From: Chlorokybus atmophyticus
Lineage: Eukaryota; Plantae; Mesostigma and Chlorokybus algae
Length of the DNA: 64,000 bases
Assembly: GCA_009103225.1 (NCBI GenBank)
Contig: RHPI01001517.1
Span: 322,505 to 386,504, forward strand
Direction: 5' to 3'
The notes beneath the pieces were generated by a model. It had not been told where the DNA came from and did not search any database. It saw only the letters and a list, made by a program, of their open reading frames with translations. A program made the translations under genes and the position numbers. Below are positions 13,375-58,314 of this stretch, piece by piece (the stretch's first letter is position 1; each line of letters opens with the position of its first letter).

Positions 13375-15287
13375 GGACGCGATTTGCAATTGTGCCGTTT
13401 TTGCGCAATCGCAGGGGTTGAGCATATGGTACACCCGCTCGCATCACATCAGCGCAAACGACACCGTACATAAAGGCTTTTTGTATCAATCACCATGTTC
13501 GCTTACAGCAATTGCGACAAATAGCTAACGCCTCAGGTCGGTCGCAAACAACAATAAGCAAATGATTGCAATCGGATGAATGCAATTGGCTGGCTGGTTG
13601 GTTGGTTGGGCGCCTAGCTATCTTTTACAATATTGCATACATTATATATGAAGCATAGAACATAATCACGTTAAGCCTGGCCATTAAGCTTGGCTCAACG
13701 TAATTGCATGCAGCTTTGCAAACACAAGCGCAACATACCGATAGTAGCGCAAGTTAGTTGACTCGGCCAAGTGACCCCGCTTTGTAACTGGCGGAACTTG
13801 CGACCTCGTAACTTTATGAGTCATTAGCCAATTCATCCTAATTCACAACTTAGGCGACTACGCCTTTCTCGGAATTTTGAAAGCAGCTTGCGCGCTCAAG
13901 TGCGCTAAATGGGTTGCTACTTGCAACTACTGGAGAAGGGGGAAATTAGAAGTCCCTACTCAAAAGTCATTAGCTTCTCCAACCTTCCTCGACTTGAATC
14001 CGATTACACGTGTTAAACGGTTGCTTCAAACTTTACAACATGTGAAAACAGCAAAATCCTCATACCATCGTGAATGGCGAGAGCATTGTGGCCTTGTGTG
14101 TATATGTCGTAAGCTGACAGCCAAACACTTTTAAGTTTTTGCGATCACACAAACGCGCTTAAACGTGTGCTAGCGTAGCGGGGACTCGAAGATGTTGCAA
14201 TTTCGCTAGATCCTCTCGCGCATACCATAAAGACAAAATTATGTATAGGACTTAAGGGGCTTATATTGTTTGCGACCTCGCTAAATTCTACCCGCTTATA
14301 CGCTATATTAATTGCTGCAACCGCTGCCGGCTTCCTACAACGGTTGTAAGATTTGCTGTGTCTAACTATAGTTAAGCATTTGGGTTCACGATAGCTACCC
14401 GGAACCTAACTAGCGAAGAAAGGTTGATTCGCTATTATAAATGATATTATGAATGCGAGTTTGGTTATGATGCAATTAAACTCGTGCCTAACTCAATTTT
14501 CGCCATTGCAACATCATAGTGCAACTCAATGTAGGCTTCTATTCTCATACACTGTGCCATAAATACTAGCACAAGCCATCATCTCAGCCACAGCATAATT
14601 CAATCAAGTATAATAGCTCTATGTTGGGTTTGTCCTATTCGCGATTACAGGAGCCCCCCNNNNNNNNNNNNNNNNNNNNNNNNNNNNNNNNNNNNNNNNN
14701 NNNNNNNNNNNNNNNNNNNNNNNNNNNNNNNNNNNNNNNNNNNNNNNNNNNNNNNNNNNNNNNNNNNNNNCCCCCCCCCCCCCCCCTCCCCTTCTATGTA
14801 TTGTAGCAGAGTACCGGCCAAATACAGCCCTTCTTACTCTTGGTGTTTATGTATGCGTAAAACATTGCCGTTCCTTTTATTAAGTACTGACTTTTTATTA
14901 TTTACTTGATTTTTAACTTTTTATTTGGTATAAGGCGAGCAGAAGCAAACTCACACACGAGTTATATGCGCAACACAACTCATGCTGGGGAGTCGATATG
15001 GGTCGATAGCACAATGGCTACGCCCAGCACCCAAGTGCAATACAATACATTTACGTAAGTGTACAATTCTATGTAGGCTGATCTATACACAACGTCTACA
15101 TCAGGGTGATATGATTTCATGAAGCGCATGAAATGCGCGCCCATGAACTCAAGAACTCGTTAATTAGTTATAAGACTCTTGTGCCCCTAGTGCCTTGGGC
15201 ACTTGGGGGCACAAGCACTCACTAGATGAGTTGTGAGTCACAAGCTCCTATCATGTGGCTTGAAACCCTAGCGCGGCGGCGCCATCC

Positions 15288-16433
15288 TTGGCGAGGGTGG
15301 CGAGTGTGGTGAGGAGGTGTGGACGGAGGAGGACCTCCATTTTGGTTACACGGTTACAAGCGAGTGCCCAAGATGATGAAGAGGAGGTGGCGGCCACGGC
15401 GGCGGCGGCGTTGCTAGCCGCCAATCGCTTGTCGCGGGCTAGAAGTCCGCGTCGCCACATCTTGAGTGAGGAGGAGGAGAGGAGAGCGGCGAGGGAGACA
15501 TGCGCCTCCCCGTGGGGAGGGGAGAGGAGGAGGTAAACAAGGAAGGTGACGGTGGTGAAGAGGATGAGGACGACGCGGACGGCGAGGACCCGCCCTTCGT
15601 CACTTACACGCGTAGGAAGAGGGAGCCAAGCTCCTTCTCCAACGATTCTACCCCATCCATGATACCCACGGAGGCAATGGCACGGAGTTTGGAGGACTTG
15701 GAGGCGGAGAACATGCGCCTCAAGCGGGAAGGCGCCCGCCATCCCTCGTGAGCCCGTTGCCACCGGGCCCAACCACCCGCTACTTGTGAGCATTCTTCGT
15801 CGCGAGACGAACTCCAACACCCCCAATGCTCGGGTGGAGGCGATGTGCAACCGCTTTAATGAGCCCGCGGTCCCTTGAAAAGAGAACATGAAAAAGCGGG
15901 CTCGGCAACATGTGGATGTGGCGGCTTACCTTGGTGCGGCGGCGAGCTCCTTCGACCGTGTGCCCGCTCACCTTGCCGATGATCCCAACTTCGCCCACGG
16001 CCGCAAAGAGAACATGAGAGGTGGGCTCAATCTTTGTAGGGTCATGTGCGAGCATCACTGGAACACCATTATGTGGGTGCGGAATTGGTCCATGCCCACT
16101 TGCACATGCATGCGTTGCGGGCCTTGTGAAGGCCCTGCCCCATTATTAATATAGATGCACGAGATGCATTTGTTCTGCATCCCTCCTTCCCCCGTGTTCA
16201 AGGGGCGGGAGGGCCCGCACCTAACGCCATTGCATGCCCACCCCTGTATTCACATTATGACTACCTCACAGCAAGGTAACAAGCACAGGGCAGACCATTT
16301 GCATCTGCATCCATAGCACATGGTAAGTAAGGTTGAGGATGGCATGTGGGTGCGCATGGCATTAGACCCTGTGGATTTGAGCCTGTGTGCTTATGAGCAA
16401 CCAGTGTTGCTCATACGTGCTTTGTGCCCTAGC
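15288..16433 (+). pseudogene. gag: DIRS-A gag, 5' part
   Basis: Colinear with the minus-strand copy at 52850-54150; resumes at 33346 after TSD CTAGC. Confidence 0.8.
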
Positions 16434-17166
16434 TGTAACAAAGTTGGCATTACACTTGCTTTTTAGCTAAATTTCTAGCCCCTTTACCCCCAAACAGCCC
16501 TGTTTAACAGCCCTGACGCGTTATGCTTATATAAAGTCCCGAGTCGCCGAGTTATTTCTACATCAAGGGCGCGCGTTTAAAAGGTCACGCGAGCGTTATG
16601 CGCTTTGACCACCGTTGACAGTTTTTATGCGCCATTTAAACAGTCGATTCACGTGTTTTTGAGCATGTGTTCGCGGTGGAGTCAACATAGTTGACTTCTA
16701 CAATAATAGTGTAGCCTCTTACGTATATAAGTAGCTAGTATACTGCTATTAGGGAGGTTGGACCAAGTAGAAGTTAAGTTATTGCTCTTGTTGTGAACGG
16801 TGTGTGCGTGCTTGTGGAGTTTGCATCCACAGTGCGTGTGTGCGCGTGGGTGTGCTTTTGCTACAGCTCTTGCACGGACCAGACTGCCCCACAAGCTTTG
16901 AGGCGCCTACATTGCCCTCAAGGTGTTCAACCCCACGGTGCGAATACTGTTGTTGATTGATTGCGAGTAGGTGCACGTGTATTAGCGCCATTAGTGTGCT
17001 CAATTGCATCATAGCTCGTTCATCAGGCTGGTAGCTCTGGTGAGGTGTTCAATCAGCACGAGCATCGTTACATTTTGGTATCGGAGCGTAGTTGTGCAGG
17101 TGGTTATCAGGTGAATAGCCACATATATTGATCCTTGTTACATCGGACACTTTTCCTCTTCCCACC

Positions 17167-18172
17167 ATGGTGAACAACACCCAACGTATCGAGGTGCTGG
17201 ATGAGCAGCTCCAAAGCTTGATGGCTCGCCTCACCACCACTGAGGAGCGTTTACAAGTAGCTGAGGAGGCTGCCAATTCTGCCAACCAACGCGCGTTCGC
17301 TGCAACGAAGCATCTACGTGCAGTGGAGGGGCGCTCAACAACCTCTTTGGATGGAGTTGCTGCAGTGTCACAAGGTGCTGGAGGTTCTATTACGTCATCC
17401 TCCCATCAGTTCAAGCCAGCAAAATCGGACTTCTATCACGGTCAGCGAGATGAGGACAAAGTTGATGCGTAATTATTTCATTGTCGGCAGTATGTCGATC
17501 TTGCGCGTGTCCCCTCACATGAGCACGTCGTTGCTTCGGCCATGTATCTGCGAAGTGCTGCATTGACATGGTGGCGGTCTTATTTGTCTCGTGTGGAGAG
17601 CGGATTTGCTCCAACGCTATCAACCTTTGAAGAGTATGCTGCGAAAGTGCGTAGGCAATTTGTTCCCATTATTAGTAAGCAAAGTGCTCGTGATCGCCTT
17701 CACGCATTGACTCAAATGACATCCGTTGTTGTCTACACGGAGAAGTTTTTGCACACGACTCTGTTTATCCCTGAAAGTTGAGAAGTCTGATCCGGCCACA
17801 CTGCAAGATGCTATCAAGCGAGCGGAGCGTGCGGATGCTCTTCTTCAACGGTCTTTCTCTCAGTCCCGACCTGCTTCTCAATTGCGGCCTGGTCAACCAT
17901 CACGCTACGAGGTGAACTCATATGCTGCTGCTGCAAGTAGTGATGCTGATAGAGAGGAAGAAGGCGATGTTCCTTCTCTTGCTGCAATCTTTCAGCGTGC
18001 TGCTAAAGGCACCCATTCGCGTGGTTTTCTTTGCTGGAATTGTGGAGACAAGTCCCACAGATTTTTTGCTTGCAAAGAGCCTCGTCGACCTGACGGAGTA
18101 CTCCCCTTCAAGCCCAAGCATCTAAATGCGACAAGCAGCATCAAGCAGCAGGTAAACGGTCGGTCTCAGTAG
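17167..18172 (+). pseudogene. gag: Gypsy-3 gag with zinc knuckle
   Basis: FKPAKSDFYHG, AALTWWRSY, ARDRLHALTQ, CWNCGDKSHRFFAC; internal stop and frameshifts. Confidence 0.88.
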
Positions 18173-18606
18173 ACATTGGGGCTACTGCTGAGACTAGGAT
18201 GCAGCCTCAGGTGCGGACAGCTGAGTTGTTTGCTGCATCTGCTTGCGATGGAGTTGAGTTGCGCACGCATGCCCATGCGGGATTGATATTCCTCAAAGCC
18301 CAAGTTGGAGGTCACGATGGTGTAAGGAGAGGGGGTGCTACCTCCTCCATTTAATCTACTACCCCAACACCACCACCAGCCACGCCGACCACACCGCCGC
18401 CGCCAGGGGCAACTGCCGAAGCAGAAGATCCCCTGGCTATGGCGGCTGCTGCGTTAGCAGTGCCGCCATACAGTTGATATCGACATGAGACTCATGTCTC
18501 ATGTCGATATCAGTGTTACAATTAAGTAACACTACATTAGGGCCTTAACACTAGGTTAACGGCCCTAATACGGCTTAATTGGCTGTATATACCCGTTGGG
18601 ACCCTT

Positions 18607-19020
18607 ATTTAATCCTAAATAAGGGCGGGGAACTTCTATAGAGGTAGCACTCCGTTACATTCCCCCCCACTTAGGTTTCAATGTCCTCATTGAAGGGTTA
18701 GCAAAGCCCCACCATGAGCACCGAGAACCAAAGCAGTGAGAGATTTAATCCTAAATAAGGGCGGGGAACCTCTATAGAGGTAGCACTCCGTTACATTCCC
18801 CCCCACTTAGGTTTCAATGTCCTCATTGAAGGGTTAGCAAAGCCCCACCATGAGCACCGAGAACCAAAGCAGTGAGAGATTTAATCCTAAATAAGGGCGG
18901 GGAACTTCTATAGAGGTAGCACTCCGTTACATTCCCCCCCACTTAGGTTTCAATGTCCTCATTGAAGGGTTAGCAAAGCCCCACCATGAGCACCGAGAAC
19001 CAAAGCAGTGAGAGATTTAA
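18607..19020. repeat. Three tandem 136-bp units, each containing the LTR end, PPT and 3' UTR
   Basis: ATTTAA-starting units at 18607, 18743 and 18879, with a closing ATTTAA at 19015. Confidence 0.97.
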
Positions 19021-19039
19021 CCAGGGCCGAAGCGGTAAA

Positions 19040-21473
19040 GATGTCTGCCAGCACCCTTTTACCGTCCGCGTGTGGACACAGCACTCCAGTACCCCCGAAG
19101 AATCTCTTGGCAGTTGGTAAGATTCCTTTCGGGCTCCCACGTGTTGTGCTCAACACCATACCCTTTCCATTACGTCAACAGATGGCCACTAATACAACTA
19201 TTGCGCTGCTTTAACAGTCTTGCGACTGCCAAAGTGCCCAGCGTACGGTGGAACGTGTACATCAGCTATGCATTTCGCACGCAATCCAGCATGGTCTGGT
19301 ATTACTAAGCTGGTGCCCACATAATACAAGTTGTCTCGTTTGCTCAGCTTTTGCACGTTGTCCTCTGACGAGAACCATGGGTCAAAAGCATACCCTTGCA
19401 CAACAGCTTGCACAAACTCATCATCCGGTGGCAATGTACCGCGCGTCGCAAGCAATTGCGCACGCATAGCTGCCAACAATGATGGACAACGACTCAGAGG
19501 ATCAGCAACATTGGTTCTGCCTGGCCAGTATACCCACTCAAAGGTAAACCGGGACAGAAACTCATTTTAGCGGGCTTGCCTTCGTGACAAGTTTTGCTGT
19601 GTTGAGAAATACACCAATGGATTATGATCAGTCACCACTGTGAACTGAACCCCCTCCAAGTAACATCGCCATGTTTCCAGAGCATGTACTATACCAAGCA
19701 ACTCTTGCTTGGTGGTAGTGTAATTTACCTCTGCTGGAATGAACTTCCTACTCTCATAAGCACATGGTCTGCCATCTTGCAACAGTACTGCACCACACTC
19801 AAGGGTGGACGCATCGCTAACCACACTGGCATGCTTGTCCCAGTTTGGCAATGCCAACACTGGAGCAGAAGTCAAGGCTAGCTTCACCTGTTGCATAGCA
19901 GCTTCTTGTTCAGCTGTCCATAAGAATGGAGCATCTTTTCGCAACAGTTTTGTTAAAGGCACCACTACTGTGGAGTACCCCATCATAAACTTGCGAAAGT
20001 AGTTTGCCAATCCCAAGAATGATCGCAGCTGATGGATATTCTTAGGTTGAGGCCAATCCTTTACAACTTGCACTTTGCGAGGGTCAGGTTTCACACCCGC
20101 ACCGCTCACAATGTGCCCCAAGAATGGCAACTCCGTCTCGCTGGAGTCACACTTCGCAAGATTGGCAAACAAGCGATGTGTACGCAGCAAGGCGAACACC
20201 GCTTCCAAGTGCTGCTTATGCTCTTCCTTGGTTTTACTAAAGACAATGATGTCATCCAAGTAAACCATAACATACTTGCCAAGTATGCCACCAAACATCT
20301 TATTCATTTCCTTCTGAAACACTGCCGGCGCATTAGTCAATCCAAAAGGTAACACTTTGTATTGATAATGGCCCGAAGGTGTTCTGAATGCTGTCTTGTA
20401 AACATCAGAAGGATGAATCCGGATTTGATGATACCCACTTGTCAAGTCCAACGTACTAAAGTACGCATTTCCCGACAGTTTATCAAACACATCATCAATC
20501 CGGGGCAACGGGTATCGATTCTTTACCGTGATCTTGTTCAAAGCACGGTAATCCACACACATGCACAGCTTTCCATTCTTTTTCATCACAAACAAGATGG
20601 GCGCGCCAAAGGGTGAAGAACTCGGTTCAATCAATCCCTTTTCCAATAACTCTTTAATTTGAGTTTTCATTTCCCCCCTCTCTCAGGGGCTCAGCCTATA
20701 TATAGGCCGAAACGGAGGCTCACTGTTAGGAATGAGTGGTATTGTGTGTCCGACACCTCGGTCAGGAGGTAAGCCTGGCAATTCATTTGAGAACACATCT
20801 TGATACTTCTTAATAATGTCTGCAACACCTTCTGTATTTCCCGGCACAAAGTCGTCCGACGACGTTAAGTGTACCAAAAAAGCCGGTGTGTTTTTGCGCA
20901 ACGCACGTTTCACTTGCAGTGCGATGAGTAGCGCAGGGTCGGGCTGCTTGTGGTCCAAGCTATGTGACCTTTCACAGACAATGTTACACGCTTACGACCT
21001 TTCTTTACCGTGCACAAACGTGCGCCAGTATCCAATGTCATATTGACATTTTCCTGCCATTCCTGTCCTAATACCACATCAACACCTGATATGTCGATGG
21101 ATACCACTATGAAAGTAAGAGTGGCATGATAATTACCAATCTTCACCTTCATTTTTATTTCCCCTTTCACTGGCAGCGCACCCCCCGCACCGGCAGCTGA
21201 AAATGCTGAGGGTTTACACGCTATCTTGTTGTGCACAACCCATTGTTCCTCAACGAAGTTGTGTGTTGCACCAGTGTCAATCAAGAACGAACTGTTTACA
21301 CCCTGCATTGTGCCACTAAATGTCCACAACAGAGGTACCACCCGTCCTTGAAACGTAGCCAAGAGTCCGTGACTAATTCGAGGGTTGATCAATATGGCTG
21401 ACAACCGTACTGTCCCTGTTTCACGCTTGCTGAATTGCTTCAACACACACCTCCCCGAGTATGTTTTAACCAT
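19040..21473 (-). pseudogene. pol: Gypsy-2 pol: PR, RT, RH, IN N-terminus fused to chromodomain
   Basis: FLIDTGATHNF; ORF 19567-20670 with VYLDDI and YESRKFIPAEVNY; HVPPYAGH...WPSV runs directly into WKGYGVEHNTWEPERNL. Confidence 0.95.
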
Positions 21474-21754
21474 GGGCCATGATACTTTGGCACCATCACC
21501 GCCATACTCAAGGTTCTGTGCTTATTCTGCAACTCAGTCAATGCATGCAACACATCGGTAAGCATGTTGAACTCCACATGTACCAGCACACAAGCATTCT
21601 CTTCCACTTTTTCAACATCAAAGAGTGGCAACTTGTCATGTGCTTGCCATGCATGTGTCATTACATGCACTTGAGACAGATCATCAAACCAGCTTGCTGC
21701 TTTCATCTCAAGCAAGTGGCTATCAACCGCAACTACATTAATCACGGCGTAATC
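21440..21754 (-). CDS. Extra ~100-codon segment in frame after the gypsy-2 gag stop; possibly a degenerate N6-adenine MTase-like domain
   Basis: Open frame continuing gag after TAG; LVHVEF...VLHAL...AVMVPKYHGPW aligns by eye with WCHPPP...IMRHA...CLIVPKWTTQTWW of the DIRS MT domain. Confidence 0.45.
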   Translation of the reverse strand, partial: DYAVINVVAVDSHLLEMKAASWFDDLSQVHVMTHAWQAHDKLPLFDVEKVEENACVLVHVEFNMLTDVLHALTELQNKHRTLSMAVMVPKYHGPWLKHTRGGVC

Positions 21755-23233
21755 CTATTTAACCTTCTTGGCCTTGCCCTTCTTGGCGGGGCAGTTCTTC
21801 GCAATGTGACCCGGCTGGTGACGTACGTGACAGGTGCGAGCCGCAGCGGGTGTAGCACCACCAGCAGATGTGCCACCGGTAGGAGGCGTGAATGTCTTCG
21901 CCTTCTTTGCCGTGTGCGCACTCGGCTGAGGGTAACGCTTTCCTCCCACCCCGTGCGGCTTGACCGCAGCTGCCACATGTGTCTTTTCCTGCACCGCCGT
22001 GTTATCGCTGTACAGATACACGCTCAGCTTCTGCAGCTGGGCCAAGTCCTCAGGAACCCAAGGAAGTCCCGTTGCCGTGTTGTACTGCAGCTGATCGCGC
22101 ACACGCGCATCCAAGCCGCGTTTGTACAACTCAAACTGCTCAGCCTTGTCCATGGGCATGAGGCCACTGTTCACGCGACCCACCAACGCTTGGAACTCCT
22201 GCAGATAGACTGAAGCCGTCCGGCCATTCTGTCGCAGCTTGTTGAGCTTGTTGCGAGCCTGAGTAGCTGGATCCATGCCACCATAGCGCTCCACAAGGAA
22301 CTTGAATAGTGCCTCCACTGTCTTGGCCGCACCATCCTCTGTCTGCCTCGCCCACTCGGCGAGAGCGTCAGATGGTATGAGCAACTCAGCAACAGCAATG
22401 TGCTCGCCAACTGGTCGCTTCAGTGCTATCAAGTAGTGCTCAACAGTGACCACCCAATTATGGATGCTGACACTGCCGTTGGGCTTGAACTTCTCAGGCT
22501 TGTTCAGTGCTGTAACCGGCAGCCCCGCTGATGCTCCAGCTGCTGAAGTAGCACCCGCCACCTGTTGGAGCAGCGCCACCAACTCAGACTGCATAGCATC
22601 GAGGCGTGCCGTCAACTGCACTCGGCCAGTCAACTTGTCTTCCAAGTTAGGTCCCAAGTACCAGAACACGTCCTTGCAACGCTGTGAGGTTTCCACTCCC
22701 AAGGTGGCCAAAGCCTCAAACGCCATTCGCTTGCCTTGGTAAGGGAGAGGCTTATCGTAAACAGCCATCAGAGCAGCCACCTTCGGATCACCGCGCACGA
22801 GTGGCGGAACATTGTTCGTCAACTCGTGCTCAATCATGCGGATCACCATCTCCTTGCTTGCGCAAGGGAAATTGGCAAAATCTGTCTCATAGCCATCACG
22901 AACCGTCTGCGCCCATGCATCCCACACTTCCTGACGAAGCTGTGGGTAAGCATCGATTAAGGCTTTGCGCTCTCGCGCATACTTCTCAATAGCCCCACCA
23001 ATAACAAACTGTGTGTCCATTGTAGCTGGCCCACTCTGAGTAGATTGATCGGGAGAAGCTTCGCTATCCTGCGCAGCTTCCTCCTTGTCACTCTCAGTGA
23101 GCTTGTAGCTCTCACTCGTGTCCGAGTCTCTCACTTTGTCATCACTTGATGGTTCGTATGATGACGATGAGTCAGGGACGGTAAAGTACTTCTCACCTCC
23201 CTCTCCTTGGTCAGACATCTGCCCAAAGACAGC
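21755..23233 (-). CDS. gag: Gypsy-2 gag (open, ~490 aa) with degenerate zinc knuckle
   Basis: AELLIPSDALAEW and DPATQARNKLNKLRQNGR are homologous to gypsy-1 gag; CHVRHQPGHIAKNC. Confidence 0.92.
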   Translation of the reverse strand, partial: AVFGQMSDQGEGGEKYFTVPDSSSSYEPSSDDKVRDSDTSESYKLTESDKEEAAQDSEASPDQSTQSGPATMDTQFVIGGAIEKYARERKALIDAYPQLRQEVWDAWAQTVRDGYETDFANFPCASKEMVIRMIEHELTNNVPPLVRGDPKVAALMAVYDKPLPYQGKRMAFEALATLGVETSQRCKDVFWYLGPNLEDKLTGRVQLTARLDAMQSELVALLQQVAGATSAAGASAGLPVTALNKPEKFKPNGSVSIHNWVVTVEHYLIALKRPVGEHIAVAELLIPSDALAEWARQTEDGAAKTVEALFKFLVERYGGMDPATQARNKLNKLRQNGRTASVYLQEFQALVGRVNSGLMPMDKAEQFELYKRGLDARVRDQLQYNTATGLPWVPEDLAQLQKLSVYLYSDNTAVQEKTHVAAAVKPHGVGGKRYPQPSAHTAKKAKTFTPPTGGTSAGGATPAAARTCHVRHQPGHIAKNCPAKKGKAKKVK

Positions 23234-24365
23234 CGTTAGCAAGTGCACAAGTACTCAGATTGTGCACTGCAATACAGGCAAAATCTAATAATTTTGTCTC
23301 GTCAAGTGTTGAGGCGTTACGGTGGAGCATACAGCCCCAAAAGAGCTCTCCACACACCTCTCAATTAGACACTCACTCTGCAACAAACCGTGCGCGAATC
23401 CACGCGACGGTTCACGAGTTATGATCTCTCAAAGTTTTCACTTTGTACAACCCAGCACAATTCACAACTGTGGTTGACACTTAGGGTGCCAAAATCTCGT
23501 CAAATCGACCTTACAGGCCGATATCGACCAGTTGTGAATGGTGAGTTTGATATCGGCCGCTCAGAAAATTCTGGCGGCCTCACCGCACAAAATGGCGGCA
23601 CTGAGACAGTCGATGTTGCCACCGAACTGCCCCCCCCAAGGGAATTTTCAAATTAATAAAAAAACCCTTACACCACGAATCCACGTGGTGCTACACACAC
23701 AATATAATACAATCAATGTATGTTTACTATGTGTTGTGCTGCAATGCAATGCTTCAGGGACAGGCCTGAATGGCCGGATCCCTTCACACAATAACAAACT
23801 GGACTAGGACAGGCATGCTAGGCTAGGCATGGCATGCATGGCATGGCAAGCTAGGCTAGGCTAGGCTAGGCTAGGCACCAGCAGCAGCGTTTAACTATTC
23901 TAGTTAAAACATAAAACACTTTAACTACCACTAGTTTAACGCCGCCTGCCGCCTGCCGCCGCCCCTGCCGCCTGCCGCCGCCCCTCCCACAGGCCCCTTG
24001 CCGCCCGTGCTCCGATACCAATGTAAGGAGAGGGGGTGCTACCTCCTCCCTTTAATCCCCTACCCCAACACCACCACCAGCCACGCCGACCACACCGCCG
24101 CCGCCAGGGGCAACTGCCGAAGCAGAAGATCCCCTGGCTATGGCGGCTGCTGCGTTAGCAGTGCCGCCATACAGCTGATATCGACATGAGACTCATGTCT
24201 CATGTCGATATCAGTGTTACAGTTCAGTAATACTACATTAGGGCCTTAACACTAGGTTAACGGCCCTAACACGGCTTAATTGGCTGTATATACCCGTTGG
24301 GACCCTTATTTAATCTTAAATAAGGGCGGGGAACCTCTATAGAGGTAGCACTCCGTTACAGATGG

Positions 24366-31307: not shown

Positions 31308-31312
31308 TTAAA

Positions 31313-32670
31313 CACCCTGAAGCTTCCTGATCCTGGGAAACAGGCATGCTTTACCACAATGAACGGCTGTACATTCTTGCAGAGCCGTATATGCGTGTTT
31401 GTTTTATGGAGGAAGCACACTCTTCTCCAAGTAGTGGGCACCAAGGCGTTGAGCGTACTACTGCCACCTTACGCAAAAGCTTTTACTGGCCACAGATGCA
31501 TAAAGACACTGTCGACTTTGTGGCTATCTGTGACGTTTGCTAACGCGTAAAGGCGTCAACCCAAAAGGCTGCTGGTCTACTTCAACCTCTTCCTGTATCA
31601 CGTGCATTGTGGGAGACTGTTACCATGGACTTTATCTTTAGGTTGCCTCGTACCACTGCTGGCTACGATGGCATACTTGTAGTTGTCGACAAGTCGAGTT
31701 AGATGGTGCGGCTAGTACCTTGCACATCTTCTTGTACTGCTCCTGAGATAGCGAAGATGTTTATGAAGCATGTGTTTAAACACCATGAACTTCCTAAGGT
31801 GATTGTGAGTGACAGAGACCCTCGATTTACTCGCAACTTCTGGCGTGCCTTGCACAAGGATCTCGGCACCAAGCTCAGCTTCAGCACTGCTTTTTACCCT
31901 CAGACGGACGGTCCGACAGACAGGGCTAATAGAGTTGAAGATACCCTTTGCTGCTTTGTCAGTACTCGGCAAAAGGATTGGGATGATTGGCTGGACATTG
32001 TGGAGTTCAGCATCAACAATAGGAAAAGTGCTTCTACAGGTGTGACCCCTTTCTTTCTCAACTATGGTCGTCACCCAAGCACTCCGTTGCTTCAATCTCT
32101 GCCTGCTGCTGAACCTATTGATGCTGTTTACCACTACTTGCGACAAGGAGCCGAAGTGTTAAAGCTTGTGCGCGACTCTGCATTGACAGCGCAAAACAGG
32201 CAGAAACAGCACGCAGACATTCATTGCCGAGAACTCTCCTTTGCAGTTGGTAATTGGGTGCTAGTGTCTGCTAAACATCTACCCCTGCTCACATTCATAC
32301 AAAAGCTGTCAAACAGGTGGATTGGTCCCTTTCAAATCACAGAAGCGGTGTCGTTTGTTGCGTACAAAATGGAATTGCCACCAACTATGCGCGCACATCC
32401 AGTCTTTCATGTGAGCCTCTTGAAGCCTCATGTCGGTGAGCCTCCTGCACGCCCTCCTGCTGTTGTTGTTGACAACTCGCATGCGGAGTTCGAAGTTGCA
32501 GACATTTAAGATGATGCTGTACGCAAGGGCGTAAGACTGTATCTGGTCAAGTGGGTTGGCTACCCTGTATACGAGTCGACTTGAGAACCCGCAGAGCATC
32601 TAGCAAATGCCCCTGCCATCCTTAAGGGATATCATGCACGTCGTAGTGCAGCTTTAAGGACGAAGCTTCT
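31313..32670 (+). pseudogene. pol: Gypsy-3 integrase and chromodomain
   Basis: HSSPSSGH...FYWP...CDVC, VIVSDRDPRF, AFYPQTDG, HPVFHVSLLK, EFEVADI...YLVKWVGYPVYEST*EP. Confidence 0.93.
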
Positions 32671-33345
32671 GTGAGCGGGAGGAGTTGTAACAAAGTTGGC
32701 ATTACACTTGCTTTCAAGCTAAATTTCTAGCCTTTTACCCCAAAACAGCCATGTTTACCAGGTCTGACGCGTTATGCTTTTATAAAGTCCCGGTTTGCCG
32801 GGTTAGTTCTAAATTAAGGGCGCGCGTTTGGAAGGTCACGCGAGCGTTATGCGCTGACATTTGACCACCGTCGAAAGCTTCCATGCGCCGACGCAATTTT
32901 TACAGCTAATTTATGTGTTTCTGAGCATGTGTGCGCGGTGGAGTCAACATAGTTGACTTCTACAATGATAGTGTAGCCTCTTATGTATATAAGTAGCTAG
33001 TATACTGCTATTAAAGAGGTTGGACCAAGTAGAAATTAAGTTAATGCTCTTGTTGTGGACGGTGTGTGCGTGCTCGTGTAGTTTGCATCCACGATGCGTG
33101 TGTGCGCGTGGGTGTGCTTTTGCTACAGCTCTTGCACGGACCGGACTGCCCCACAAGCTTTGAGGCGCCTACATTGCCCTCAAGGTGTTCAACCCCACGG
33201 TGCAAATACTGTTGTTGATTGATTGCGAGTAGGTGCACGTGTGATAGCGCCATTAGTGTGCTCAGTTGCATCCTATCTCGTTCATCAGGCTGGTAGCTCT
33301 GGTGAGGTGTTCAATCAGCATGAGCATGAGCATCGCTACACTAGC

Positions 33346-33736
33346 ATTGAACAAAGTGTTCAAGCAATTCAGGTATGTGGAAGTGGCCAACAAGCACAGT
33401 TGGAAGGTGGTGGAACTGCAGGGCAACCCTTTCGCCACGGATGACATGGAGAAGAAGCGCGTTAAAAAGGCAATCAAGGAGGTGGCTGCGGCGCAGCCCA
33501 AGCCCAAGGCAAAGCCTGCCTATAATCCCAACAAGGGGCGGGGCCAATACCCCCCTCGCTACTGCGGGTCCTACGCATTCGGTGCGGGGCACATCAGCTA
33601 CAAGACCGCTCCCATGCAGTCTCAAGCAGTTTCTACTGGGGGCCAACGTGATGCCCGCACTTGTTACAATTGCGGGGAGCCTGGGCACCTGCGTGCTTAT
33701 TGCCGTAAGGCCTCCGCTAACCGTGGGGTTCGGTAG
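33346..33736 (+). pseudogene. gag: DIRS-A gag, 3' part with CCHC knuckle
   Basis: CYNCGEPGHLRAYC; homologous to 52440-52850. Confidence 0.88.
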
Positions 33737-34847
33737 AACAGCTTGGTAGCTGTGGGGACATTGTGATAGCCTAGCAGCTGTACACTTGTGTGCAATCGTT
33801 GCTGGTAACTTCGTTTGAGGTCTCGCACAACCCCTAAATGGGATGAAACTTTAAGTGCATCCTTGTAACGTAGTGACGCTCACGAAGAGCTATATAATGT
33901 GAAATTTGAACACGATTTGCTATGGTTGCACATTAATTGGTGCATAACTTTTGTGTAAGGCCGTTGTTGGAAAACTTTTGTCTTTCTTTGATTTTCTATT
34001 GGACGTCGCTTATCGGTGTGAGCGCTACGTAGCGCTTCGTTATTACACCTTAAACGTCCCCATCAGACATTGTATGGAAAAATTACGACTAGTACAAAAT
34101 GAGAGTGCATGCACTCAGTTATGGCACATATTGGGGGGCCGAAACAGGGGCAGCGTATACTGTGGCACTTGACTGCACTGCAGTTGAGTCGGAGCTGGTG
34201 GAGGACTTGATGAAGCGTCATGAGTTTGCACGAGCACCTAGCAACTTGGTTGTGGAAGGTCCATATATGAGGCACCGCTTACGGGAGGTCTTGCCCGTAT
34301 GGCGTGAGTTCTGTGAGTCTGCTATAGTCCTGTCATGGGTGGAGTATGGGTACAAGCTGCCGTGGGCTCAAAATCCACCGCCCGAATGGGCATTCACCAA
34401 TCATGAGGGTGTGCATGAGTTTTCGGACTTCACTACAGCGGCCATTGCGAACTTGGTGCACAGTGGGGCTGCATAAGAGTGTGTCACACCCCCCCTCGTG
34501 ATGAGCCCACTCGATGTGGTAGATAATGGCCGCAAGTTGCGCCTCATCATGGACTTGCGCTATGTCAACTCCTACTTGGTGAACACCCCGTTCAAGTATG
34601 AAGATGTGCGCAGCATTTTAGACTTGCTACAACCCGAGGATTGGTTGTTCTCCATGGACTTACAGTCTTAATACCATCATGTAAACATTCACCCCACCTT
34701 TTTGGGCTACTTGGGGTTCTCATTTGCGGGCAAAGTGTACAACATTTGCTCATTGCCATTTGGGTTGAGCACGGCTTGCTTTGCATTCACAATGGTTACG
34801 AAGCAGTCGGTGCGACGCTGGCGTGCGCAAGGCATCCGGGTGTTGCC

Positions 34848-35359
34848 TGTAACGGAAATGTACATTACATCACCACATATCGACCATAAAAGCACCAAGT
34901 CTTTTGTGGTCGAGTGGGCTGTGACATTGGTCATCGGAGCTTGAGACCCGGGTTCGATTCCCGCCTTGCACACAAATTCCGCGGTCGTTGTTTCTCGATC
35001 TAATAACATCGTAAATGGTCACTTTATAAGTGCCATCATCGATGGATCGCGACTTGCCTAATGGCAGTCGCGCCGAACGACCAGTTCAGTCGGCGCGGCA
35101 GGGCGCGACCTGTGGGGCCGGCAGCAGTGCAATATGCGCGCGTTGACCGATATGGGCCAAAATTGGCCGGTCCTTGGGTAGTGGGGCCGGTGACCGACCC
35201 TAAATCAGACCCCTGGGAAGATTCCCCAGCTAACGAGCGCCTGCTGCCGAGGACGTCAGCGTTCTTAAGTGGGGGGGGGGGGGCCCGGAAAGGTACATTA
35301 AATCACCACAAATCGACCATAAAAGCACCAAGTCTTTTGTGGTCGAGTGGGCTGTGACA
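34848..35359 (+). mobile_element. TRIM: 512-bp non-autonomous LTR element
   Basis: 79-bp LTRs 34848-34926 and 35281-35359; PBS TGGTCATCGGAGC 34928-34940; PPT TAAGTG(n) 35266-35280; TSD TTGCC/GTGCC; no ORF; host RT reads through once it is removed. Confidence 0.93.
34907..34970 (+). promoter_or_regulatory. tRNA-like Pol III A box (TGGTCGAGTGG 34907-34917) and B box/T-arm (GGTTCGATTCC 34951-34961)
   Basis: Consensus boxes at tRNA spacing; AGACCCGGGTTCGATTCCCG resembles the 3' half of Gly/Glu/Asp-type tRNAs. Not a complete cloverleaf. Confidence 0.7.
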
Positions 35360-36029
35360 GTGCCATACATCGACGACTTCCTCTTTGTTGCTCGTTCACG
35401 GACAGCGCATGCCTCCACCCTGGCTGTGGTGCAAGCAAATGCAGCATGGTGCGGGCTTGTGATCAACACCAAGGCACAGACTGTACTCAACAAAGTTATT
35501 GTTTTCCTCGGCTTTGTGTGGGATACGCACGCTGGCACTAGTCGTGTCCCCGGCAAGAAGCGCGAAGATTTGCTCAGAGACTTGCAACGCGCATTTGGTG
35601 ATAGGCGCCATGTGCCAGTAAAGTTGCTGGCCCGCATCTGTGGCAAGCTGCAATCTATGTTGGGTCTACCATAAAACTCATAACTTGGCATACACGCCGC
35701 CTAATTGAGACCCGCCGCTCATGGAGCTCTCACATAGTGCTACACCAACCTGAGATCACGCAATTATTGTGGCTAAGAGACCACGTTGAGAAGCTTAACA
35801 TGGCACCCATTTGGCCTACCGTGCAGCCGGACATAGTGCAATTTGTGGATGCTAGCGGCACTGGTTGGGGACTAGTGCGCCATGGCACAGCTACCCCCGT
35901 GGCGAAGGGCACAATCACACATAATGAGTGTTTGACTTCATCAACACATCGCGAATTATTGGGACTTGAGCGTGCCCTGGTCATTGTTGAGGAGGAGATA
36001 TGGATGCACGGTGCTGTGCTATGACGATG

Positions 36030-36640
36030 CCCGCAATGTGTACTACAGTATGCGCAAAGGGGGCAGTGAGGCCGAGCACTTGCAGCAAGTGGCATGCCGT
36101 ACTTTCTCTCTACATTGCCACCGGCATTGCATCCGCTTGCCTGTGGAGTGGTTATCACGTAAACTCAGCGAGGAGGCGGACGCGCTCTTCAAAGTACCGG
36201 ATGTAAACGGTCGGACCTTGCAAACCCCATGGGTCCGCTTGCTCGCTCACAAGTTGGGCCCCTTTGATGTGGACCGCTTTACCATGGATGCCGACACCGT
36301 GTGTGTGGCCTTCAACTCAGCATTGCCATGTCCGAGCTCATCCGGCAATGCCTTTTATCGTAACTGGAGTAATTGCAACAACTGGTGCCATCCCCCACCA
36401 CACCAGGTCGGCGCTATTATGCGTCATGCCCGCGAATGCAAGGCTCGCATATGCCTCATTGTACCCAAGTGGACAACCCAAACTTGGTGGCCCGTGCTCT
36501 GCCCCGACGGTGTGTGGGCACCATTTGTCACAGACGTTGTGAGCCTGCCTAAAGGCCCAGCCTGTTTATGGCCCGCAAGTCACGGTACTTCAAGGGGGCT
36601 TGCCCGACAAGCGTATATGGGCATTGCGGATTGACTTGCG
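36030..36640 (+). pseudogene. DIRS-A DNA N6-adenine methyltransferase-like domain
   Basis: GPFDVDRF...FNS...AF..NW...NWCHPP...LIVPKW..QTWWPVL, in the position DIRS MT domains normally occupy after RH. Confidence 0.8.
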
Positions 36641-36719
36641 TCTTGGCCATTAACACGTGCTGTGTGCAGCTTCTATTAAGCGTAGCTCACAGTTGCTCAT
36701 GCCCAACGCCCCCGGAGAC

Positions 36720-37640
36720 TACGAGATTGAGCGCATGCGCACCTTAACCCAGCAATGGCAGCATCGTCACGTGTTACTAGCACCCAGCGGGGCCATGATG
36801 GCTACTAGCGACGCTTTGTGGAGTTCTGCACGCCTCGTGCTTGAGCTGCCCTGCCAGCAGACCCTGGCATAGTGGCCCTGTTTTTGATTAAGATTAAGAT
36901 TAAGGTGTCGGTGGATTCCACCACCCCGGCACCTGTGAAACATGTCTCTTCGGCCATACATGCTGCTCATACTATGGCAGGCCACGCCTCTCCCACTGCG
37001 CACTCGTTGCGGTGGTGCGTGAGGCCGCTGCGAGGCTGCTACCATCAATCACGCGAAAGAAGGACGCCTACACGTATGAGCTGTTGCGAGCCATGGTCTC
37101 GCACTTTGCACGCAACGGGTTGGACTTGGTGGCCAGGTTGCAAATGGTGGCGGTGCTGCTGCGGTTTGCGGGTATGATGCGGTATTCCGACCTGGTGGAG
37201 GTCAACGCGCAAGACATTGAGTTTCGCCCAAGCCGCATGGATCTCATTATCTCGCGCAGCAAAACCAATCAACACGGTGTGGGCGCCACAGTGCACATAG
37301 TTGCTGTGGGCGGTTACTTGTGCCTGGTGATGAACACCGAAAAGTTGTTATTTGCCTCGAGACATTGGCACGCGGGACCAGGCAAGTTGCTGCGCTCCAT
37401 CATCCGAGCAGGGGGGACGTGCTTTATATGCAACACTGTGGTGCCATACGGCACTATTTTTGGTTGGGAGAAGGCAGCCATTAAGGCGGCAGGGGAGGAC
37501 CCCACGTGTTTTGGCTCACGCTCTGTTCATTCGGGAGCTGCGACCCTAGCCGTGAAGGCTGGTGTGCCCCAACTTCTGCGGCAGCAGTTTGGGCGCTGAA
37601 AGACTGCCACTACAGCTGAGAGCTATGTGCGCGCTGCTTT
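36720..37640 (+). pseudogene. DIRS-A tyrosine recombinase
   Basis: LRFAGMMRYSDL, SRSKTNQ, RSVHSGAAT (degenerate HSxR), GR*K...AESYVR containing the catalytic Tyr. Confidence 0.9.
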
Positions 37641-37714
37641 GCCTGAGTTGCACACACACTGACGAGGAGCCTCGGTTTGGGTGGTACGTGCCCTCACTAT
37701 TTATATACATACAG

Positions 37715-37791
37715 TATCGACCCATAGTGACCCCCCAGCATGAGCTGTGTGTCGCATATAACTTGTGTGTGAGTTATATGAGTTCAAGCGC
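37715..37791 (+). repeat. DIRS internal complementary region (ICR)
   Basis: Reverse complement of the element 5' end (14948-15010) joined at 37775/37776 to the reverse complement of the 3' end (ATATGAGTTCA). Confidence 0.88.
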
Positions 37792-38921
37792 GGCGTGGAA
37801 GGCTCCGTTATGGATTCAAGCTCGTGTCAAAAAATAGAACCACCCGCCTCCTTGACGTCGACTATGTCACACCGTTTTTCTCCTTCTTTTATTGGGCCTG
37901 CGAGGGGGAGGCGCCACGAGAAGCTCAAGAGCTACCAGTGGTAGAACCTGAAGAGAGCAGCTGCATTGACCCGCGATTATTTGCAGCAGCCAAAGTTGCA
38001 AATGTCAATGGCGGAGGAGGCCCCTGCAAGTTGTGTGCAAGCGACGTCGTTGCGGATGGTGTCCTGTGCATTACTTCGCAGCGAGGAAGCCACAATAGGA
38101 GCAGCCTACTTATTATGCAGGTGCAGTTATTTATTCATGAATGATCAGGCGTGTCTGACCTATTGTTGCATACACAGCAGCTGCCCTCAATTGCTTGTCG
38201 GGTGCTATATGCTTGCCACTGACTTTCCGCATGAAGCATAGTCGTAACCCACCTCGGCAGAGACGCCTCATAGCCGGTGAGGTAAGAGGTGTCGGGAAAG
38301 AGAGTAAACGTGGGCCTCAACAGGGTGGGAGCAGCAAGCTGCTAGTGAGGTGAGGGGCGTGGGGACTGGTGAGAAGGGGGGGGCGCCTAAGCGCGCCGCA
38401 TGCCTCAAAGGGGAGGGAACAGAGATTGTGATGCTAGCGAAGCCTGCGCCACTACCACAAGACCAGCTCCAGAGCATCGTTTTAGCAGTGCGCCGGGAGC
38501 GTGAGAACTCACACACAGCTCATGCTTGGGGGTCGCTATGGGTCGAGCACGGTGGCTATGCCCAGCACCCAAGTGCATTACAATACAAATGTACAAGTGT
38601 ACAAATATAGCTGATTTATACACAATTTTGCACTAGGGCGAGGCTATAACTATGGGAACTACTTCTTCACGCCAGGTGCAAAAGTTACGCGCTTCGTCGG
38701 TCTTCGACTCGTTGATGGCGCCATTGCTGCCGATGCCGGGGTCGAAGCTTGAGAAGCTTATACACTTGTAAAGTATACCACCCTCGCCAAGGATGGCGCC
38801 GTCGCGCTAGGGTTTTAAGTGATTAGATAAGGAGCTTGTGACTCACAATCCACATCTAGTGAGTGCGTGTGCCCCCAAGTGCCCAAGGCACTAGGGGCAC
38901 AAGAGTCTCATAACTCATTGA

Positions 38922-41211
38922 CGAGAACTAGTGATGCGCCTAGTGTGTGTGTATTTGCCTCTTACATACAAGTGTGCACACACCAAGGACAAGTGCAGCA
39001 AGCACGCCAACTATAGAGACAATGTGCGACCCATTGTATTAAGCAGTATACAGTGTGTTATATACTATGCTACTAAGCACTAGTCAACTCTAATTAACTC
39101 TGATCAAAGTCAACACTAGTCAACACCAGTTAATGGCCAAAGTCAATGGTCAAAGTCAAAGTTGATCAACTTGAACTTTGACCATAAAAAACCATAACTG
39201 CCGTAACTCCCTTAACTCCCGTAACCACAAAAGTTAAGCTGATCGTACCAACTATATGTGTAGGCGCCGCCTATACGTGTACTTTCAACAAGCTATAACA
39301 ATCAACACTCCCACACGAGCAGCTTGACCTGGAGCTCTAAGTTTTTCTTGCAAGCTTACCCACATTAACTTACTCCTTTGAACACTCCCACGGTCTTGAT
39401 GCTTGTCTGCATAACACCATCCTTCTCCTCGTGCTACCAGCGAGATTACAAGGTTCCAGTACTCCTTGTTTTCTCCTTATAGTTGTCACATCAGGTTTCA
39501 CAACGCCACGCCTGATCTTGCTCAGGTGCTTTTGAAGACTCTCTCAATGGCAAACTCTGCTATAAACTTCGCTGAGTTTCCTACCGCAGCAATGCTGTAC
39601 CAGAGTGTAGGCCGTACAAGGGTTGATCAGACCCTTCTACCAAAGAGAGCGCCCCTCCCATCTCCTGTTAGCTAGCTATACAACTCAGTCCTTGCATACC
39701 AATCAAGTGAAGTGTTCTAACCAGTACCGCACACCTGTGTGCTACCCAAAACAAGCAACTCCACAGCAATGCAACCTCTAGTGTATGCAGCTCAACACCA
39801 GCAACTACTCATAGGCTAGCAGTAACTGTCGCAAACCTTTGTGTCTGTGACCTCCGTCTACGCATGTCCTTCGCGCACCCTTGCAGTGGGAGAGGACGGA
39901 CGAAAACCTTCCACTGCAACTCCTTGGGATCCTCACTAATGCTAGAAAGCAATCGCCATTGTGGCGTGCTCCTCCTTGGTTGCCTCATTGTGGATCCTCG
40001 TCTGGCACTCGCAAATGAAGTGGCCCTTCATCTTGCAGTAGTGACACTCTTTGTCACGTGATGGCTTCCCACCACCTGCTTTGCTCCTGCTTTGTGTGTG
40101 TTGAGAAGATGAGGCAGCAAGTGCGATAGCTTCTCCACCATTCTCTATCTCCTGAACATCCAACTTGCCTTCCACAGCTAGTAGCTTAGGCACTACATCA
40201 GCAAACTTTAAAACCACATCTGAGGACTCCAACACAGTCACTAGTGTAGCAAAGCTCTTTCCTAAGCCAGCTAAAACTGCCCACATCACCTCCTCTTCCT
40301 TCACATCGTGGCCCACTGCTATAAGGTCTTGCCAAAGCTCCCTTGCACGCAAGATGTACTTCTGGATTGGCACTTTGTGCTCCATTTTCAGCAGTGTCAG
40401 CTTGCGTCTTAGCTGCAACTTGCGCGAGTTGCTGTTGGCCTTGAAGAGGGTGTTGAAGACCTCCCACGCCTTACGTTCAGTCTTGCAATGCGCAATAAGA
40501 GGGAGATGGAAGTCTTTGATGTGCAAGCCTACCAGCGCAAATGCTGATTGTGATTTCTCTGTCCAGGTGCCAGCGTCACCTGTTCTTGGCCGCAATAATG
40601 TGGAGGAGGTGGGGTCGACAAAACTCCAGAGCTTCTTGCAGATCAGCACCAATTTCATCTTTAGCGACCATGAAGCGTAGTTGTGTGGATTAAGGGACTC
40701 AATGGGCATCCTATCTGTGTCAGCCATTGCTTGCTACACAACAGTACAACTCACCCTCTCCCCAAGAACACTCTACTAGTAGGCGCCTATGCTCAACACT
40801 CTCTCTCACTAGCACAAGCAATCACACAAGCGAGTGCGGGCCCATAACCTGTTGAGAACTAGTGTTGCGCCTATTGTGTGTGTATTTGCCTCTTATGTAC
40901 AAGTGTGCACACACCAAAGACAAGTGCAGCAAGCACGCCAACTATAGTGACAATGTGCGACCCACTGTGTTAAGCGGTATACAATGTCCTATATACTATG
41001 CTACTAAGCACTAGTCCACTCTAGTCAACTCAAGTCAAAGTTAACACTAGTCAACACTAGTCAATGGCCAAAGGCAACGGTCAAAGTCAAAATTGACCAT
41101 GGTTGACCATAATTGCCATAACTCCCGTAACCATAAAGGTTAAGCTAATTGTACCAACTACATGTAGGCGCCGCCTATACATGTACTTTCAACAAGCTAT
41201 AACATTTAACA
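38922..41211 (-). mobile_element. Gag-only copia (TR-GAG-like), family 1, copy 1
   Basis: LTRs ~38922-39307 (outer end clipped) and 40850-41211; PBS GGTTATGGGCCCGC 40836-40849; PPT ~39308-39316; the internal region encodes only gag. Confidence 0.92.
39942..40727 (-). CDS. gag: Intact 261-aa copia-type Gag
   Basis: ATG to stop; NYASWSLKMKLVL, RKLQLRRKL, CHYCKMKGHFICEC. Confidence 0.9.
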   Translation of the reverse strand: MADTDRMPIESLNPHNYASWSLKMKLVLICKKLWSFVDPTSSTLLRPRTGDAGTWTEKSQSAFALVGLHIKDFHLPLIAHCKTERKAWEVFNTLFKANSNSRKLQLRRKLTLLKMEHKVPIQKYILRARELWQDLIAVGHDVKEEEVMWAVLAGLGKSFATLVTVLESSDVVLKFADVVPKLLAVEGKLDVQEIENGGEAIALAASSSQHTQSRSKAGGGKPSRDKECHYCKMKGHFICECQTRIHNEATKEEHATMAIAF

Positions 41212-44008: not shown

Positions 44009-44129
44009 ACATCTCTCTCACACCGCGTATACACTCACACGCGAGTGTATGCACGCCCGCTAAGTGAAGAAACTCACACACAAGTGTTACACAAGAACAA
44101 GCAACACGCCTTGATGTTGAAGATACTTA

Positions 44130-58310: not shown

Positions 58311-58314
58311 TGAT

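Follow-up and report, generated by a model that had tools for sequence, protein, structure and literature searches.

We analysed a 64,000-nucleotide stretch of DNA from the green alga Chlorokybus atmophyticus, hereafter called the window. Within it, a span of 24 kb is a single decayed DIRS1-like element of about 6.6 kb, named c1, that has been broken up by insertions. An earlier note had placed the family at positions 14948-38924; the ends and repeats it described are retained here, but the span is not continuous, since a 16.9 kb LTR element and a 512 bp TRIM lie inside it. Altogether, c1 is split by two nested LTR-type insertions and its right end was removed by a third. From left to right, it is composed of B (161 bp), A (about 205 bp), gag, reverse transcriptase (RT), a Dam-like methyltransferase (MT), a tyrosine recombinase (YR), a two-part ICR (61 nt and about 50 nt), a further stretch, X1, of about 680 bp, an internal copy of B, a spacer of 137 bp and an inverted A, called A' (Table 1). 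The B and A on the left, the ICR, and the internal B, spacer and inverted A on the right are all real, lie to the base where they had been placed, and are far above chance. The classification of c1 as DIRS1-like is based on structure: a gag with a CCHC knuckle, RT, Dam-like MT and YR stand in the DIRS1 order, with the inverted repeats A and A' and an ICR shortly after the YR frame. For mapping only, the three segments belonging to c1 itself were joined by script into a composite from which the nested insertions were omitted.

Table 1. Features of c1 and of related copies, in positions of the window
Feature	Position	Strand	Description
B_L	14948..15108	+	left extension of 161 bp, lying beyond the inverted repeat; starts AACTCACACAC, ends AGGGTG
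A	15109..15313	+	left inverted terminal repeat
5' region and decayed N-terminal part of gag, c1	15314..16427	+	collinear with c2, 86-89%
Nested LTR retrotransposon	16428..33334		foreign to the DIRS element; 16.9 kb, TSD CTAGC; empty site in c2
Remaining gag, c1	33335..34476	+	CCHC zinc knuckle at about 33656-33706; PF00098, E 2.7e-5
Reverse transcriptase, c1	34477..35671	+	RVT_1, E 1e-4 to 2e-4, under the Pfam cut-off in this decayed copy
RNase H / Dam-like methyltransferase part of pol, c1	35936..36631	+	PF05869, E 1.9e-4, under the Pfam cut-off
Tyrosine recombinase, c1	36904..37650	+	decayed, same orientation as pol
Left ICR	37715..37775	+	reverse complement of B nt 1-61 (14948-15008), 61 nt at 89%
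Right ICR	37776..37826	+	about 50 nt equal to the start of A, complementary to the right terminus at its end; degenerate, about 70%
X1	37827..38505	+	about 680 bp between ICR and internal B
B_int	38506..38640	+	B repeated directly inside the element, with unchanged 5' and 3' borders but a 17-nt deletion
Spacer	38641..38777	+	common to c1 and c3; decayed in c4
A'	38778..38925	+	right inverted terminal repeat; outer 52 nt or so missing
c2	51760..54484	-	left end B+A and gag
c3	42066..42561	-	free-standing B-spacer-A' unit with exact element termini, inside a copia element
c4	58805..59148	+	spacer and A' from a subfamily that has diverged (76-77%); homology runs out close to the B/spacer border
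c5	43812..44018	-	an A whose base at one diagnostic site is of left type

The larger insertion is bounded by LTRs at 16431-17065 and 32683-33327, which are 90% identical, and itself holds further nested elements. The smaller one, the TRIM, breaks the RT at 34848-35360 (TSD TTGCC/GTGCC), and c2 presents the empty site. When the RNase H/MT piece was used in a full protein search, 2413 relatives were found, Closterium among them, with a top identity of 40% in a collection that does not include the host species and where an intact copia pol was matched at 51% at best; 570 relatives at E<=1e-10 had an alignment spanning the MT region. For the tyrosine recombinase, Pfam gave Phage_integrase only at E 0.14, below the cut-off, and a word-based protein search with this piece gave no match within the length range that was allowed. 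R...HxxR-like boxes were read in it, and Atlas gave 0.96, with the same family set in 22 of 30 matches and Phage_integrase in the best three rows. No integrase (DDE) was found in the c1 element. From a metagenome scan came 24 loci, short and distant (28-40% identity); none of the eight longest (3.7-8 kb) had informative termini.

The inverted terminal repeats align at 90% between 15156-15300 and 38925-38778 (E 1e-47), and the identity of A to A' is 87-95%. In c1, a copia-like LTR cuts into A' at 38925, and the continuation of A' past this insertion was not found in the disrupted region downstream; the last 52 nt or so are known only from c3 and c4, where a complete A' is visible. The outer 44 nt or so of A form a palindromic hairpin (DNA fold z -5.6 to -9.7, three copies), and a decayed ATG-GCG-GCG-CCA start lies at its inner end. 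The direct repeat was detected between 14973-15092 and 38513-38625 (82%, E 3e-19), and the internal B opens at 38506 with the same 11 nt AACTCACACAC as the left one, once a 17-nt slippage deletion is allowed for. Compared by eye with the right terminus, the sequence upstream of 38506 showed no right-end copy. The spacer has no second copy within the element; a short reading frame that ends in KRVTFAPGVKK* lies on its reverse strand, at 38659-38724. As for X1, it has no repeat in the window and no match to the region upstream of c4, so that its membership in the family is not proven; it gave no meaningful Pfam match, only a weak SAP25 below the cut-off in a reverse-strand frame (E 0.0035).

Complementarity of the left extension to the ICR is confined to its nt 1-61. 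Upstream of the left ICR we looked for a complementary partner of B nt 62-161 and detected none (z about 0); the sole partner of this part of B is the direct internal copy. The match of the right ICR is anchored at base 1 (z 2.4-4.7), with the right-end sequence taken from c3 and c4 because the end of c1 is cut. A 9-6-9 palindrome at 37756-37779 spans both ICR halves with a single mismatch, a match expected zero times by chance, and its arms were also found in B of c1, c2 and c3. About 950 bp separate the ICR from the right inverted repeat (37826 to 38778). The left ICR is also complementary to the internal B some 730 bp downstream, at 94% over 36 nt. This inverted pair had been put forward as the sign of a distinct route for regenerating the ends; the pair was found as described, but it follows from the duplication of B, and the distinct route has no support.

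The independent fragments invoked earlier also bear on this layout. The copy c2 has a second left end with B+A (54484->53934, 89%), resumes at 47280->46553 with RT and is lost thereafter. The unit at c3 (42561->42066) is 80% identical over 430 nt to the right-end unit of c1. Both of its flanks are copia sequence, about 480 bp of the copia element are gone at the site, and no copy has both flanks intact. Since a B-spacer-A' unit with the same borders lies at this second locus, the internal B is not a one-off artefact of a tandem insertion. The flanks of the c1 and c3 units are unrelated, so the two are no local duplication. Neither upstream of c4 nor outside c5 was a B copy detectable. Only c1 combines left end, ICR and right end, the last of them truncated, and with a decay of 10-20% in every copy, identity upon insertion is not measurable.

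To compare the left and internal copies of B, we counted informative sites: nine group the copies by position and one by element. The position-specific differences, which include an indel, are common to the left copies of c1 and c2 as against the internal copies of c1 and c3. The left copies share 88.5% of their bases and the internal-type ones 90.4%, as against an identity of 81-87% across types, in a sample of four sequences of about 125 nt in which c3 may come from a separate lineage of short units. B of c3 is of internal type at all nine diagnostic sites, yet has a complete B start. For A and A', the informative sites gave no split by position (2 against 1). The pattern in B indicates that left and internal B are not copied from each other each cycle. 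Judged from these sites, the internal B is not the template from which the left B is renewed in every cycle, but an old, separately inherited paralogue. Present evidence makes the additional repeat look like a passenger rather than a working part.

The c1 family thus has DIRS1-type inverted ends and an ICR plus an extra direct repeat of the left tip, and is an unusual variant. Among the described elements closest to it are AmDIRS1 from Allomyces macrogynus and AcasDIRS1 from Acanthamoeba (PMC3266345). Like these, the family has inverted terminal repeats, the order gag / RT-RH-MT / YR, an ICR in two parts that follows the recombinase gene, and an extension outside the left repeat with none on the right. 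Such left extensions were reported only in fungi and amoebozoa, are 12-64 bp long, are covered in full by the ICR and come without a direct repeat (Piednoel 2011, PMC3266345); the layout of c1 is therefore not the documented norm. In contrast, the extension of c1 is 161 bp long, lies in a green alga, has a direct internal copy and matches the ICR over its first 61 nt only, whereas the published definition has the extension wholly complementary to the ICR. The distance from ICR to right repeat also sets c1 apart: an ICR next to or overlapping the right repeat is the published norm, usual but not strictly defining (PMC9210276).

With DIRS-1 of Dictyostelium discoideum (Cappello 1985 model; Malicki et al. 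2020, PMC7192593), c1 shares the logic of inverted repeats plus ICR, an ICR complementary to both outer ends set side by side, a right-end hairpin that may prime synthesis, and copies clustered among other repeats. However, DIRS-1 has its extension on the right and its ICR near the right repeat (PMC7192593), and no end is directly repeated. PAT-like, kangaroo, TOC3 and Ngaro elements (A1...B1-A2-B2; PMC4157794) do repeat their left tip directly near the 3' end, with an internal copy that starts at the first base of the element, as in c1, and PAT has the methyltransferase domain in common with it. The termini had been called hybrid in the earlier note. What stands is the combination of inverted repeats and ICR with a direct repeat of the left tip; a split direct repeat of the PAT and Ngaro type is not supported, as c1 has no B1-A2 junction and its B copies have diverged. 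Unlike in those elements, the ends of c1 are inverted repeats, there is neither a B1/B2 pair nor a direct internal circle junction, the junction copy is inverted (the ICR) and the direct B copies are paralogues 81-87% alike, whereas theirs are renewed each cycle.

By analogy with Dictyostelium DIRS-1, the ends of the c1 family were most likely rebuilt in the ordinary DIRS1 way, with the ICR as splint. The RNA would be reverse-transcribed into a single-stranded cDNA, one end of which, the reverse complement of B nt 1-61, and the other, the start of A, would anneal next to each other to the two parts of the ICR. With the ICR as both splint and template, a circle would then be closed. Its junction would complete the 9-6-9 palindrome ATATAACTC-N6-GAGTTATAT, which is likely the site used by the recombinase for integration without target duplication. 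The internal B would be passed on through the RNA together with the left B, with no template role in each cycle. If it is such an inherited paralogue, the genomic RNA would have to start no further than some 60 nt into B, or else upstream of the whole element. A start in the first 60 nt leaves no space for an upstream promoter inside the element. This is awkward in view of the start-codon-like inner end of A, which suggests that A is in or just upstream of the transcribed leader. The 100 nt of left extension for which the ICR is unable to account limit where the RNA can start, and they stretch the published definition. On balance, we consider c1 to be a dead copy of a DIRS1-like tyrosine-recombinase retrotransposon of a green alga that most likely replicated by the ordinary DIRS1 route, its internal B being an old paralogue.

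A different history, which we hold unlikely, is that c1 was truncated at its 3' side after the ICR and that 38506-38925 is a separate short unit like c3 that came to lie nearby, the true right end having no internal B. Nested elements are densely stacked in the window, X1 is unique in it, the internal B of c1 clusters with that of c3 at 90%, and c3 shows that a B-spacer-A' unit occurs alone with exact ends. Moreover, the ICR abuts or overlaps the right repeat in described DIRS1-like elements (PMC9210276; PMC3266345), as against the 950 bp or so seen here. However, the ICR is experimentally essential for DIRS-1 retrotransposition (PMC7192593), and a unit without ICR and RT would be unable to spread by the DIRS route. 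As such units cannot spread alone, repeated exact units are most simply the remnants of parents in which B stood beside spacer and A'. Furthermore, there is no other inverted A between the ICR of c1 and the unit, a right repeat belonging to c1 was not found in the disrupted region downstream either, and the unrelated flanks of the two units do not fit a local duplication.

In another reading, the start of the internal B served as a second site for recombination or circularisation. Used by the recombinase or by the ICR splint, it would give deletions or mini-circles of about 500 bp that integrate as B-spacer-A' units such as c3. This is improbable, although the internal B, at its start, shares with the left end the AACTC-N6-GAGTT half of the junction palindrome and the palindrome arms recur in B of c1, c2 and c3 and in the ICR. 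In the same direction, c3, which sits within a copia element, runs from base 1 of B to the final base of A', and its B combines the nine internal-type sites with a complete start. Plain homologous recombination between two B copies would yield the same product, the loss of about 480 bp of copia at the c3 site is not expected of a clean site-specific event, and only one such unit lies in the window besides that of c1. What mainly sets DIRS1-type and PAT/Ngaro-type elements apart is whether their internal copy of the circle junction is inverted, as an ICR, or direct, as split repeats, and intermediates between these end architectures "are not observed" (Szitenberg et al. 2014, PMC4157794). It is a speculative extension, and an equally improbable one, that the family is a surviving intermediate, with a working ICR, a PAT-like direct copy of the left tip from the terminal base, and a second site still shedding terminal units of about 500 bp. 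The c1 family offers a concrete case for the study of how one end layout turned into the other, with a direct copy of the left tip that has exact terminal borders and lies in the green algae, a lineage without prior dissection of DIRS1 termini.

Finally, a functional hybrid in the sense of the earlier note, in which the internal B would act like A2 of PAT and Ngaro and template whatever stretch of the left extension is left uncovered by the ICR, with an RNA that may start inside A, is likewise improbable: the ICR covers just 61 of the 161 nt of B, the borders of internal and left B are identical at both sides, and the start-codon-like inner end of A fits a transcription start in or near A, but there is no B1/B2 pair or direct internal copy of the circle junction, an internal B that shares the sense of the left B on the strand of the cDNA would offer no intramolecular template there, and copying at each cycle would erase the nine position-specific differences that were found against one by element.

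Self-comparison of the window showed that 14948-38925 is a single DIRS-type element of ~6.56 kb (c1), split by nested insertions: an LTR retrotransposon, with 90% identity between its LTRs at 16431-17065 and at 32683-33327, and a TRIM. A partial copy, c2, has neither insertion, and the empty sites are visible; c2 also contains a poly-C run followed by an N run (an assembly gap) at about 53880-53913. The right end of c1 is interrupted at 38925 by a copia-like LTR, and the outer ~52 nt of its right inverted terminal repeat (A') were searched for beyond this insertion and not found. Within the older 16.9 kb LTR element lies a young copia element (26575-31304), with LTRs of 382 bp sharing 97.6% identity and an intact 1058-aa gag-pol frame (27037-30213). 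Another nested element carries a 339 bp LTR pair (18321-18659 and 24022-24360), adjoined by three tandem 136 bp units (18607-19020).

All the frames of c1 are decayed, and domain matches were obtained from stop-free pieces: a gag CCHC knuckle (E 2.7e-5), RT (E 1e-4 to 2e-4), a Dam-like methyltransferase (E 1.9e-4) and, for the tyrosine recombinase, a weak Pfam Phage_integrase match (E 0.14). For the recombinase, the protein atlas gave 0.96, with the same family set in 22 of 30 matches, which is Phage_integrase in the three best of the matches listed. The gene order is gag, RT-RH-MT, YR on one strand throughout, which is the DIRS1 arrangement. The RH/MT piece has 2413 relatives, Closterium included, with a top identity of 40%. 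The window's intact copia pol reaches only 51% with its best match in public protein collections, indicating that the host's own proteins are absent from them. One metagenome scan returned distant, short loci only. Two metagenome contigs, L012 and L013, encode a distant DIRS-like methyltransferase and have identical 141-nt ends, a pattern that a 5.5 kb unit would give if circular or in tandem.

Coordinates of the features of c1, its further copies and related loci
Feature	Position	Remarks
Nested LTR retrotransposon in c1	16428-33334	TSD CTAGC; further elements nested within
TRIM in c1	34848-35360	512 bp; TSD TTGCC/GTGCC
B_L (B at left end)	14948-15108	161 bp; first bases AACTCACACAC, last AGGGTG
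A (left inverted terminal repeat)	15109-15313	directly after B_L
Left ICR	37715-37775	89% to reverse-complemented B nt 1-61
Right ICR	37776 to about 37826	~70% over ~50 nt
X1	right ICR to B_int	about 680 bp
B_int (internal direct copy of B)	38506-38640	
Spacer	38641-38777	
A'	38778-38925	cut
A terminal hairpin	15109-15152; 42066-42109; 54282-54325	
Spacer frame	c1 38659-38724 (-); c3 around 42300-42365 (+); c4 around 58825-58890 (-)	
c2	54484->51760, then 47280->46553	opposite strand to c1; 85-89% identical
c3 (B-spacer-A' unit)	42561->42066	80% to c1
c3 flanks	41879-42065 and 42562-42714	
c4	58805-59148	spacer + A'; more diverged
c5	44018->43812	A; more diverged; left-type base at one diagnostic site
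Identical ends	L012:1-141 and 5513-5653; L013:1-141 and 5517-5657	

Left and right ends were seen together in c1 only, which is itself truncated. The internal complementary region (ICR) begins just past the decayed end of the recombinase frame. An extension of its left half over B nt 62-161 was tested and is absent (z about 0). The right half reads, from its first base onward, ATATGAGTTCA, the start of A, and so is complementary to the right terminus's end as found in c3 and c4. The border between the halves is spanned by a 9-6-9 palindrome at 37756-37779, ATATAACTT-GTGTGT-GAGTTATAT, which has 1 mismatch; the number expected by chance is zero. Its general form is ATATAACTY-N6-GAGTTATAT, and the corresponding stretches at integrated ends are 14944-14967 and 42538-42561. 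Integrated left ends carry only the partial form AACTC-N6-GAGTTATAT; the ATAT that they lack makes up the right end's final four bases, so that circle closure, by joining right end to left, would complete the palindrome. This junction palindrome may be the core site of the tyrosine recombinase. In c1, c2 and c3, the ~44 nt at the outer edge of A fold into a near-perfect hairpin (DNA fold z -5.6 to -9.7), resembling the 3' hairpin of DIRS-1 that was proposed as a primer (PMC7192593). Farther into A, at ~70-105 nt, there is a second hairpin, GTGCCCC...GGGGCAC.

The earlier note had proposed hybrid termini combining inverted terminal repeats, an ICR and a split direct repeat, with a distinct route for regenerating the ends. 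The repeats are present as it described, with B_int a genuine copy of B (E 3e-19) and c3 a second locus. Allowing for a 17-nt slippage deletion, B_int opens with the element's own first 11 bases and closes with the same AGGG(T/C)G; with these shared borders, B is a discrete module. In the circle, left-end B falls exactly between the end of the right terminus and the start of A, at the centre of an otherwise A'-A palindrome.

The c3 unit runs from base 1 of B to the final base of A', with copia LTR sequence on one side and copia internal sequence on the other, which makes it an independent locus; ~480 bp of the copia element is missing there, the unit being bordered by position ~240 of the LTR and position ~720 of the internal region. 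The simplest source of c3 is a parent in which B already adjoined spacer-A', and recombination between the two B copies is one route to c3. That the B-spacer-A' of c1 is a separately placed short unit would fit with X1, the putative family sequence linking it to the ICR, being seen in c1 only; we consider this unlikely and regard the unit as more probably c1's own end. In c4, homology fades near the B border, leaving no more than a faint resemblance over ~45 nt, and no B was detectable outside A of c5, so related subfamilies may lack B. In the c5 region (43527-44018, minus strand), A is directly joined to a match of c1 composite positions 1397-1684, ~1 kb of the 5' region being missing; c5 may belong to another subfamily or have arisen by deletion. 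The arrangement at 57831-59148 is odd: a minus-strand left-end fragment (58303->57831), which begins at the inner 50 nt of A, precedes 500 bp of unassigned sequence and then plus-strand spacer + A', so that the inner end of A occurs twice.

If the left end were rebuilt from B_int, in the manner of LTRs and split direct repeats, the B pair would be identical at insertion and later differences would be private to each copy. When four B sequences were compared (c1-left, c2-left, c1-internal and c3), 9 informative columns (six of them substitutions, the others indel columns) paired left copies against internal-type copies, 1 paired them by element and 0 supported the third split. Identity was 88.5% between left copies, 90.4% between internal-type copies and 81-87% across types. 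The same count for A and A' was 2 vs 1 over ~150 nt; thus, unlike B, the inverted repeats have not diverged by position. The column pattern indicates that B_L and B_int are old paralogues that have been passed on together, which speaks against a distinct route through B_int. A right-end copy was looked for upstream of B_int and none was found, which leaves the element with no direct junction copy of the PAT type; what stands of the hybrid layout is the extra direct repeat of B, not a PAT-type split repeat. That the ICR matches B_int in inverted orientation (36 nt, 94%), previously taken as a hint of a special route, follows automatically from the duplication of B.

By its structure, the Chlorokybus family is DIRS1-like, and it departs from PAT/Ngaro elements in two of their three defining features. 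Left extensions of DIRS1-like elements were described as 12-64 bp long, in fungi and amoebozoa only, and wholly complementary to the left ICR, with no direct repeat described (Piednoel et al. 2011, PMC3266345), whereas the Chlorokybus extension is only partly matched by the ICR. The ICR overlaps the right repeat in Xenopus families (PMC9210276); in contrast to the DIRS1-like norm, that of Chlorokybus does not adjoin it.

The most likely mechanism would be the DIRS1 splint model, drawn from work on Dictyostelium, where the DIRS-1 ICR is indispensable (PMC7192593). The two ends of the cDNA, one being the reverse complement of B nt 1-61 and the other A's start, would pair side by side on a same-strand ICR copy, be filled and then joined; the circle would become double-stranded and the recombinase would integrate it at the junction palindrome. 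Since B nt 62-161 are neither templated by the ICR nor copied from B_int, they would be carried by the genomic RNA, whose start would then lie either in roughly the first 60 nt of the element or upstream of it. Such a start is awkward, because the inner end of A bears an apparent shared start, ATG GCG GCG CCA TCC..., reading inward from both ends. On the left side it opens gag, and on the right side it opens a short antisense frame; its ATG is intact in c3 only, with CpG-type decay elsewhere. The reverse strand of the spacer has, in both c1 and c3, a frame of 21 codons that ends in ...KKRVTFA..VKK and a stop near the B border; in c1 it ends in MAPSTSRRPTKRVTFAPGVKK and the stop, and in c4 it is decayed.
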